Below the pieces are notes generated by a model, which saw nothing but the letters and a program-made list of their open reading frames with translations, ran no database searches and was not told the origin of the DNA. From positions 310,001 through 374,000 of the forward strand of contig JBBPEB010000019.1 of NCBI GenBank assembly GCA_039096225.1: a DNA stretch of 64,000 bases, given 5' to 3'. The position numbers and the translations under genes were made by a program. Within the stretch, counting starts at the first letter, position 1; every line of letters starts with the position of its first letter. This stretch comes from Blastocystis sp. Blastoise. Its lineage: Eukaryota; Protista; Bigyra: Opalinata. Of the stretch, positions 2,881-5,524 are shown piece by piece.

Positions 2881-5524
2881 ACACACATTTTATACCAAAG
2901 AATGAATTAGGTCCTGCATTATTGAAAAGAAATATTCCAGTGACACGTGCTGAATGTTTTAGAAAAATAATAAGCAAACCTGTTCTAGATTATTTAACTG
3001 TATATATTTAGGAATATATTATAAAATAATAATTATTTCCTATAATACGATATTGCTATATTTATCAGTTTATTTGGGCTTCCGATATTATTATTGAACT
3101 TTTTAAATTATATACATGATAATTAATTTAATTTTTAATTAAAATATAGGAAAACATAATACTAGAGCAAACATATCACAAATCATTAGCTAATAATTTA
3201 AAAATCAATACAAAAAAGATATATCGTTTTTTATGTACTCTTCTCGTAATATCTGTTGTGAACTCGATGGAGAAAACAACTCGAAAACACATATCTACAA
3301 TTTCAAAATGGTTAAAAATGAAATTACAAAATGGTACTATGTTTGAAAGGATTAAGAGCCTTTTAACATTTTCAGAAGCAACAGTAAAAAACTTGATAAA
3401 AATGATTGCCGAAAATTCTCAAAGGTATATAAATTCATTTTTTTATTTAGCCTTTTAGTATATATTATTATTATTATTATTATTATTATTATTATTATTA
3501 TTATTATTATTATTATTATTATTATTATTATTATTATTATTATTATTATTATTATTATTATTATTATTATTATTATTATTATTATTATTATTATTATTAT
3601 TATTATTATTATTATTATTATTATTATTATTATTATTATTATTATTATTATTATTATTATTATTATTATTATTATTATTATTATTATTATTATTATTATT
3701 ATTATTATTATTATTATTATTATTATTATTATTATTATTATTATTATTATTTTACTGGAATCTAATAATAATTATAATATTTATAAAATATCATTAAAAA
3801 TAGTTGTTTAGATGAGGTAACAGTAATTGCAATAGATGAATCAATGATACCCTATCATATGGGTTCAGTAACTCAGAGAAGATTAAGTAATCATGGATAT
3901 CCTGTTCCAACCTTTCATATACCTAGAAAACCTCATAATACTGGTATATTATTATACCAGGCGTGTACATATTTGAAGGGTAATAAAGATAAGATATATC
4001 CGTTTTCGGTTGATTTGGAATTTAATACGAAACGCGGAAACACATCTCCTGGTTCATTCCTTCTTTGTCTTGCAAAAAGGTATGGCTTGACTTATTATTA
4101 TTATTATTATTATTATTATTATTATTATTATTATTATTATTATTATTATTATTATTATTATTATTATTATTATTATTATTATTATTATTATTATTATTAT
4201 TATTATTATTATTATTATTATTATTATTATTATTATTATTATTATTATTATTATTATTATTATTTTTATTATTATTATTATTATTATTATTATTATTATT
4301 ATTATTATTATTATTATTATTATATACCATTATTATTATTATTATATACCATTATTATTATTATTATTATTATTATTATTATTATTATTATTATTATTAT
4401 TATTATTATTATATTCAGGATCAAATCTAATGTTTTTCATTCATATGATAAAGCTGTCATAATAGCCGACTCAGCTTTTGGAAATGCACATACTATTTCT
4501 CAAATGAAGATTAATAAAATAAACTTCGTATTTGCTCTTCCTTCTCATGCGTTCTCAATACATCAGAAAGTTTTACAGTTTAATCTACCTTGTAATTCAA
4601 ATAGAATACTCATGAATCAAAATAGTAAAGATATTATTAGTTGTGAATCATTCATTAATGTAGAAAAAGGGGTTGTAGCAAACAAATGTGTATATTCAAA
4701 TTTCTTCAAGCTCGGTTCGTGTGGTGTAAAGTGTCCAAAAGATATTATTGGTATGTATAAATTAGCAGATATAATATATATTTTCTTATTATTATAGAAC
4801 AATATTCACCTATAATGCCAAATTATACCTATGATGAGCTTAAACCATTAAAGGTTGACGACTTGAAAGATATTTGCAGAACAAATGGACTATCTCGTAT
4901 ATATATATATATATATAAACTTTCGTCGTAATTATTTCATTTATTAATATCTATATCAACATATTATAAAGAATTTGATATAATTATATATAAATGTTTC
5001 TATTGTATGTTCTTATTATATGTCATTTTTTATTTAAAATGTTATTTTTTTAAAATTATTATAGTTATTATTATTTATATGTTTCTATTATTTGTTCTTA
5101 TTATATCTCATTTTTTATTTAAAATGTTAGTTTTTTTAAAATTATTATGGTTATTATTATTTATATTATAGAGTACGGGAAAAAGGAAGAATTGATTAAA
5201 TCCATTCTCGATTATACAGAATTTGTTAAATCAGAAGCCAGAAATGTTCCATTGATGAATATTCTCAAAGGATTTGCAAATTATAACATAAATAACATAA
5301 ATGATGTATATCGAAAGAATTTCAACTTAGTTGATTTGATGAATCGATACTATTTTCAGGTAAAACGACCGTTGTCTTCAAAAAATGTTTCAACTGCAAT
5401 GGTAATTGCAATTTTAAATTTTGCTATATTGAATTCGTTTTCACTATATTCTGTCAACCATTCAGAATCTTTATGCTATTTTAAGCTTCAATTAGCAAAA
5501 GAGTTGATACGCGAGCTAAATTAA
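2881..5524 (+). CDS. piggyBac-family (DDE_Tnp_1_7-like) DDD transposase with introns and an inserted SAP domain; 5' end unresolved. Exons 2881-2999, 3150-3424, 3804-4079, 4419-4750, 4798-4896, 5172-5524
   Basis: Spliced frame is open and has IAIDESMIPY (D1), HIPRKPHNTGI, VIIADSAFG (D2), VYRKNFNLVDLMNRY (D3 region), ILNFAILNSFSLY and FKLQLAKEL. The SAP motif LKVDDLKDICRTNGLSQYGKKEELIKSILDY forms across the 4897-5171 intron. Confidence 0.82.
3463..3752. repeat. (TTA)n microsatellite filling transposase intron 3425-3803
   Basis: Direct observation. Confidence 0.95.
4092..4410. repeat. (TTA)n microsatellite filling transposase intron 4080-4418
   Basis: Direct observation; source of the poly-Y/L/I/N ORF-track artefacts here. 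Confidence 0.95.

Follow-up and report, generated by a model that had tools for sequence, protein, structure and literature searches.

Can a transposase of the piggyBac superfamily carry a SAP domain inside its catalytic region and do without the Cys-rich domain at its C-terminus? The question is raised by a gene in a 64,000-nt stretch of DNA from Blastocystis sp. Blastoise (contig JBBPEB010000019.1, positions 310,001-374,000, forward strand). We call this whole stretch the window, and positions are those of the window unless another contig is named. The original prediction, made from the sequence of this stretch, joined exons 4798-4896 and 5172-5524 across an intron and read the product as a piggyBac-type transposase of a distinct lineage. 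A SAP motif, split by that intron, would lie between the second (IIADSAF) and the third (NLVD) catalytic Asp, where canonical piggyBac transposases have a beta-rich insertion domain. The protein would lack a C-terminal Cys-rich domain, and SAP might replace that domain or guide target choice. We find the gene inside a 3.3-kb transposon bounded by 67-nt terminal inverted repeats with 100% complementarity. Our preferred reading, which we hold with a probability of roughly 0.78, is a piggyBac-superfamily cut-and-paste DNA transposon that makes a 4-bp ANNT target duplication and encodes a DDD transposase that has a SAP domain inside it and lacks the Cys-rich domain. The duplication, a 1-nt insertion in exon 2 and the presence of the same architecture in other organisms go beyond what had been predicted.

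The window has a G+C content of ~20% and a eukaryotic character, with GT-AG introns, several of which are filled with (ATT)n. We built the gene model by reading the three forward frames together with intron borders and phases, and searched the 33.3-Mb genome (34 contigs) for related copies. The window gene was scanned against profiles exon by exon, and intronless relatives stand in for the full-length protein. As family profiles we used PF13843 (DDE_Tnp_1_7; cut-off 22.4 bits) for piggyBac, PF02037 (Pfam cut-off 23.9 bits) for SAP and PF13842 for the Cys-rich domain. Exon profiles, among them that of exon 8 (A2), were built from five genomic lineages; profile A8 is the family alignment of the relatives.

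Kinship with piggyBac

Within the window gene, exon 8 provides a link to piggyBac: its profile has the piggyBac structure 6x67 as top match in the Protein Data Bank (PDB; E 0.0045, residues 432-492), and the third Asp falls on D447. For exon 5, the language-model features place 27 of the 30 nearest Atlas clusters among those carrying PF13843 (score 0.95). Exon 5 also aligns at E 6e-15 to a paralogue on contig 23 (L018), which itself reaches 24.3 bits against PF13843.

Further evidence comes from relatives outside this genome. A metagenome scan with the exon-5 alignment led to six contigs with intronless open reading frames (ORFs) of matching architecture, and one such ORF retrieved 15 database proteins (P0001-P0015), named 'hypothetical protein' at most. 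One of these proteins is encoded on a 481-kb eukaryotic contig, adjoining an RNA-dependent RNA polymerase gene. PF13843 is matched by 10 of 18 relatives (best E 2.1e-12), including ORFs L051 at 31.7 bits and L055 at 29.9 bits, and the family profile A8 matches 6x67 at E 3.3e-6, with the part of the relatives equivalent to exon 4 mapped onto piggyBac residues 135-299. The exon-8 profile aligns to the relatives with an hhalign probability of 98.2% (E 5.4e-14). Because the contigs of the relatives have 32-49% G+C, we take them to come from other organisms. Judged by its sequences, the clade is widespread: it occurs in several eukaryotes and is not private to Blastocystis sp. Blastoise.

We then turn to the fold. 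An AlphaFold2 model of P0001, with the family alignment as input, has a predicted local distance difference test score (pLDDT) of 87.1 and a predicted template modelling score of 0.80. Its best PDB match is 6x67 (Foldseek E 1.5e-13; Z 32.0, root-mean-square deviation 2.9 Å over 348 residues), followed by piggyBat (9c0f) at Z 26.7. Tn5 and other IS4-family transposases (1muh and others) are the next-best structural relatives and match far less well, at Z ~17; they are prokaryotic, have a DDE triad and make a 9-bp duplication, whereas the window family has DDD. One paralogue has a weak DDE_Tnp_1 match near the second Asp. Among the matches listed for P0001 in the ESM Atlas, four of the five nearest fold clusters carry PF13843 and the remaining one, from archaea, is ISH3-like and carries PF01609; a SAP annotation is absent from these clusters among the matches listed. 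The fold shared with piggyBac of Trichoplusia ni (6x67/6x68) and with piggyBat comprises N-terminal DNA-binding helices, an RNase-H-like core with a DDD triad, a beta insertion domain and C-terminal helices, at a sequence identity to piggyBac and piggyBat of ~13-16%.

Several observations weigh against our reading. PF13843 gave no match (E up to 10) with any window exon or with the paralogue exons scanned singly, and a six-frame genome scan with the same profile found only the contig-23 paralogue and missed the window locus. The profiles of exons 5 and 6 had no piggyBac match in the PDB, nor had the ORF at 3787-4794. The fold and the scans concern the modelled relative P0001 and single window exons rather than the window protein as a whole, and kinship is drawn from exon 8, from transitive links and from the fold of a relative that is ~20-30% identical. 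The family also lacks the TTAA target and duplication by which piggyBac is recognised. No demonstrably intact copy was seen, as exon 2 of the window copy is out of frame and a sister copy with a correct exon 2 has two large intron insertions. Finally, a DNA-binding role of the SAP domain is purely something that we infer. Exon 5 and its five-lineage alignment found nothing in word-index protein searches, a result of little weight given the length window and the 5-mer index.

Despite the missing PF13843 match of the window exons, the piggyBac assignment of the original prediction holds: the exon-8 profile falls on 6x67 and D447, L018 and relatives pass PF13843, and P0001 reaches Z 32.0 in the kind of comparison between an AlphaFold model and piggyBac that had been proposed as a check on the spliced protein. 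Membership of the window transposase in the piggyBac superfamily is supported by these results. A distinct lineage had also been foreseen, and the SAP architecture in five genomic lineages and 18 relatives agrees with this; a look for the same architecture elsewhere, likewise proposed, found it in the intronless metagenomic ORFs and the 15 database proteins.

The internal SAP motif and the C-terminus

Exon 7 alone scores 20.8 bits against PF02037 (E 2.9e-4, model positions 5-20), which is the score of a half-domain against the cut-off of 23.9. The matching exon of a diverged contig-15 paralogue scores 22.2 bits, and a six-frame scan of the 33-Mb genome with PF02037 returned 16 sites, four of which are copies of exon 7. 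Searched against the whole PDB, the family profile A8 scores best with the SAP domain of Ku70 (1jjr, E 1.8e-8), and piggyBac comes after it. Among the relatives, 7 of 18 match PF02037 at E up to 0.01 (best 3.2e-6; P0001 23.6 bits), and exon 7 aligns to their SAP helix 1 with an hhalign probability of 90.8% (E 1.2e-6), while the exon-8 alignment covers the remainder of the motif. In each of the five genomic lineages, the stretch that separates the second Asp from the third includes a helix-loop-helix motif. Taken on sequence comparison, a genuine SAP motif between these two catalytic residues is supported, in line with the position given by the original prediction. The human Ku70 domain has a like hydrophobic pattern, a conserved Gly and a G.KK loop. 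In Ku70, a protein that binds DNA ends, SAP is appended at the C-terminus, whereas in the window family it is embedded in the catalytic region of a transposase.

The exon structure proposed for this motif was also borne out. Both exons, with their coordinates and peptides, have GT-AG borders and a fitting phase, the junction of exons 7 and 8 (C + AG) encodes Gln, and intron 7 (4897-5171) does split SAP. Because the motif is continuous in the intronless relatives, the 7/8 splice junction is confirmed.

One part of the prediction needs correcting, as far as it put SAP where the beta-rich insertion domain would be. In the P0001 model, the insertion domain keeps three beta strands (267-298), which are followed by a disordered linker (309-334, pLDDT <50), the SAP domain (342-383), another helix and the third-Asp helix. 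Since the insertion domain precedes SAP in the model, SAP appears to have been added after it rather than to have replaced it. The SAP itself is modelled as a helix (350-359), a loop (360-367) and a second helix (368-383) with pLDDT ~90, and the window exons align to these columns. Compared with piggyBac, the window family has an insert of ~75-80 residues, made up of the linker and the SAP domain, between the insertion domain and the third-Asp helix.

We also compared divergence between exons in the two closest lineages. Non-synonymous divergence (pN) is 0.15-0.19 in the two SAP halves versus 0.19-0.29 in other exons; synonymous divergence (pS) is saturated. As the lowest pN values are those of the SAP halves, SAP has been kept by selection, and at the level of sequence the comparison shows it to be under purifying selection.

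The Cys-rich domain (PF13842) is present in canonical piggyBac members, but not in all. In the window copy, the stop codon directly follows the last helix. From this stop to the right inverted repeat the plus strand has no ORF of at least 25 aa, which leaves no space for a Cys-rich exon. None of the 18 relatives matches PF13842, and all end at the same C-terminal helix. The absence of a C-terminal Cys-rich domain, also part of the original prediction, is therefore a difference from piggyBac that extends to the relatives. In piggyBac, according to one study (PMC5861402), this domain is indispensable for the breakage and joining of DNA and for transposition. Our literature search found no paper linking a SAP domain to piggyBac or to another DDE transposase, and piggyBac goes unmentioned in a paper on tortoise-associated Blastocystis isolates with genomes of 26.0-33.3 Mb and 21-23% GC (PMC12129017).

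Ends, target site and gene anatomy

The motif ACTCGTTTTT is confined in the window to the two inverted ends of the element, where chance would give an expectation of 0. The ends start with CTACAA and are 67 nt long, unlike the short CCC...GGG ends of piggyBac. The nearest copy is on contig 28 (G000:C28:364132-398142; L002/L016, L003, L004). It is 98-100% identical and is spread over 34 kb by two insertions, one of ~16.4 kb in intron 5 and one of ~14.2 kb in intron 7 at the equivalent of window position 5077. A contig 15 copy of 5.6 kb is 65-76% identical and has a 1.85-kb deletion derivative. Protein searches of the genome added three lineages at a greater distance, which lie on contig 15 (near 802 kb), contig 29 and contig 23. 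Distant lineages have inverted ends of their own (L048, 2834-2878 and 5690-5734; L049, 3267-3347 and 5803-5883), and each end again has two direct motifs, which are ACATG...TTTTT in one lineage and CAAACGCGTAT in the other. This suggests that two putative binding sites per end are a family trait.

Four non-coding elements (L019, L020, L021 and L015; Table 1) measure 2,135-2,143 bp. Their ends read CTACAATT... and carry ACGCGTTTTT or ACTCGTTTTT as a twin motif, and their duplications are AAAT or ATAT. A transposase exon could not be detected in any of the four, and by their sequences they look like non-autonomous passengers of the transposon family.

All nine copies are flanked by A-N-N-T, in the arrangement A-N-N-T, CTACAA...TTGTAG, A-N-N-T. 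The 4-bp duplication is perfect in eight of the nine (AAAT in three, ATAT in three, AGTT in one and ATTT in one, the last being the contig 29 copy) and imperfect in the ninth (ATTT/ATCT). The target duplication is a 4-bp ANNT, mostly AWWT, and not TTAA; the family has the 4-bp length in common with piggyBac and differs from it in the target, ANNT versus TTAA. We considered TTAA at 2494-2497 and 5819-5822 as the true target and rejected it, as the outer CTACAA belongs to every copy; the internal TTAA is incidental, because sister lineages read TTCA there. Formally, the identical sequence would result from a 2-bp duplication if the termini were T...A and the target preference A..T, and a piggyBac-like 4-nt stagger explains the flanks more simply. 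We looked for inverted ends in the metagenomic relatives and found none.

The transposase gene has eight exons and ends in a TAA stop at 5522-5524; all seven introns are GT...AG with compatible phases. The three Asp codons of the DDD triad (3835-3837, 4468-4470 and 5333-5335) are invariant in the five lineages and fall on conserved Asp columns of the relatives, where the second and third are the invariant D224 and D419. In exon 5, the D, the E and the RKPH are invariant across the five lineages, as is D.AFG in exon 6, which aligns on D224 of the relatives. Table 1 gives the coordinates.

Table 1. Positions of the element, its gene and the non-coding elements that share its type of ends (window positions, or contig and positions where a contig is named)
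Feature	Position	Strand	Remarks
Left target-site duplication AAAT	2484-2487	+	T2487 formally common to duplication and inverted repeat
Left terminal inverted repeat, 67 nt	2487-2553	+	two direct ACTCGTTTTT copies ~21 nt apart
Exon 1	2593-2621	+	ATG start; donor GT at 2622; start peptide kept in contig-15 (C15) paralogue
Exon 2	2753-2809	+	57 nt here; A-run 2786-2789 one A longer than in contig-28 (C28) sister copy and C15 lineage
Exon 3	2881-2999	+	40% identity to C15 paralogue
Exon 4	3150-3424	+	N-terminal helical region, counterpart of the pre-core DNA-binding region of piggyBac
Exon 5	3804-4079	+	first catalytic Asp (AIDES, codon 3835-3837) and IPRKPH..G motif
Exon 6	4419-4750	+	second catalytic Asp (IIADSAFG, codon 4468-4470) and beta-rich insertion-domain region
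Exon 7	4798-4896	+	linker and SAP helix 1 to conserved Gly; SAP from ~4839; AG 4796-4797, GT 4897-4898
Intron 7	4897-5171	+	splits SAP motif; contains 2.2 copies of an 85-bp tandem unit
Exon 8	5172-5524	+	SAP loop and helix 2 (to ~5215), third Asp (NLVD, codon 5333-5335), C-terminal helices, stop; AG 5170-5171
Right terminal inverted repeat	5763-5829	-	partner of 2487-2553
Right target-site duplication AAAT	5829-5832	+	A5829 formally common to duplication and inverted repeat
L019	C2:61707-63841		non-coding element with family ends
L020	C14:1275969-1278103		non-coding element with family ends
L021	C19:693191-695325		non-coding element with family ends
L015	C8:2301339-2303481		non-coding element with family ends

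The seven introns of the window gene are set against most metagenomic relatives, which are a single uninterrupted ORF. An intron inside the helix-loop-helix motif occurs at the same place in four of the five diverged genomic lineages and is absent from the contig-23 lineage L018 and from the metagenomic relatives; in the C15 paralogue it measures 78 nt. This distribution points to a transposon gene that gained introns in the lineage of the window's genome.

Two further features of the introns were seen. Introns 4 and 5 are nearly all (ATT)n microsatellite (3468-3750 and 4095-4410). Intron 5 is free of stops in the exon frame, and for this reason exon 5, the (ATT)n intron and exon 6 can be read in one frame as a spurious 317-aa ORF (3844-4797) with long poly-Tyr and poly-Ile runs, which we regard as an artefact. 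An AlphaFold2 model of the read-through ORF 3787-4794 (exons 5 and 6 with the poly-Tyr/Ile translation of the intron) was discarded, as its mean pLDDT was 50 and it was confident in the repeat helix only. In intron 7, the tandem unit occupies 4983-5166 with 92% matches, and the stretch 4897-5169 is ~70% identical to at least 12 other genome sites (contigs 1, 3, 6, 11, 15, 16, 24 and 31), so that a short dispersed repeat lies inside the intron that splits SAP. Downstream of the element, the next gene runs from 6148-6942 onward on the plus strand; its first exon, of 264 aa, resembles by eye the N-terminal ATP-grasp part of phosphoenolpyruvate (PEP)-utilising enzymes (pyruvate phosphate dikinase / PEP synthase type).

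Alternative explanations and meaning for the superfamily

On our preferred reading, the predicted 512-aa transposase would consist, in order, of an N-terminal helical DNA-binding region, an RNase-H-like core with the first and second Asp, the insertion domain, a flexible linker, the Ku70-like SAP, the third-Asp helix and C-terminal helices. It would bind the twin motifs at the ends, excise the element and reinsert it with a 4-nt stagger, in a cut-and-paste manner. The tethered SAP would be an extra DNA-binding module, most likely supplying contact with the ends or with AT-rich DNA in replacement of the Cys-rich domain.

Whether the window copy can still do this itself is close to an even question. 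It may be a dead relic, in which the extra A is real, no full-length protein is made and movement occurs only with transposase from another copy. In alignment A3, exon 2 has 57 nt in the window and 56 nt in both the C28 sister copy and the C15 lineage, with one extra A in 2786-2789, and with 57 nt the reading frame meets a stop in exon 3. The existence of non-autonomous relatives of 1.85-2.1 kb with the identical type of ends fits such a relic as well. However, the inverted ends of the window copy are 100% identical, the rest of the gene is free of stops in every exon, and a single-base difference in an A-run is typical of long-read assembly error. With exon 2 corrected to 56 nt, the eight exons give an open frame of 512 codons. 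The extra A may be a true frameshift or a homopolymer assembly error, and the window copy may be inactive unless it is the latter.

A different role for SAP is also conceivable, if rather unlikely: it may tether the transposase to AT-rich or scaffold-attached chromatin or target DNA and so shape target choice (the ANNT or AT-rich preference) rather than bind the ends. SAP domains are generally described as binders of AT-rich scaffold-attachment DNA. The long disordered linker of the P0001 model (309-334) would suit a roaming tether, and SAP and a non-TTAA target occur together in the clade in the Blastocystis genome. Against this, nothing links SAP to the 4-bp target, the target of piggyBac is read by the catalytic core region, and SAP was seen together with ANNT in the Blastocystis genome, the ends of the metagenomic relatives having been looked for and not found.

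A host gene domesticated from piggyBac is very improbable: seven spliceosomal introns and a protein under purifying selection would fit one, yet perfect inverted ends and target duplications flank the gene, the loci of at least five lineages are unrelated, and the ends recur in non-autonomous derivatives. Equally remote is a chance resemblance or generic helical linker in place of SAP, for while the half-domain of the window stays below the Pfam cut-off and the C23 paralogue has a weak Rho_N match, no PDB entry fits the family profile better than Ku70 SAP and the motif is kept in 18 of 18 relatives and in five genomic lineages.

Returning to our preferred reading of an SAP-bearing piggyBac-superfamily transposon, we tentatively suggest a broader history, with the odds somewhat against it: an old and widespread piggyBac clade may have traded its end-binding Cys-rich domain for a Ku70-like SAP inside the protein, and its target may have relaxed from TTAA to ANNT, at least in the Blastocystis genome. 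The superfamily itself is well known, but this clade is undescribed. PiggyBac is a main genome-engineering transposon, and its strict TTAA target and its need for the Cys-rich domain are taken as defining features. A clade that has the piggyBac fold and breaks both rules would serve as a comparison set to tell the parts of the enzyme that read the ends from those that read the target. If the suggested history is true and the transposase is active, it would be a natural piggyBac-fold enzyme with a different end-recognition rule and a less strict target site; what determines TTAA specificity and end recognition could then be tested directly, and the piggyBac toolbox could widen.

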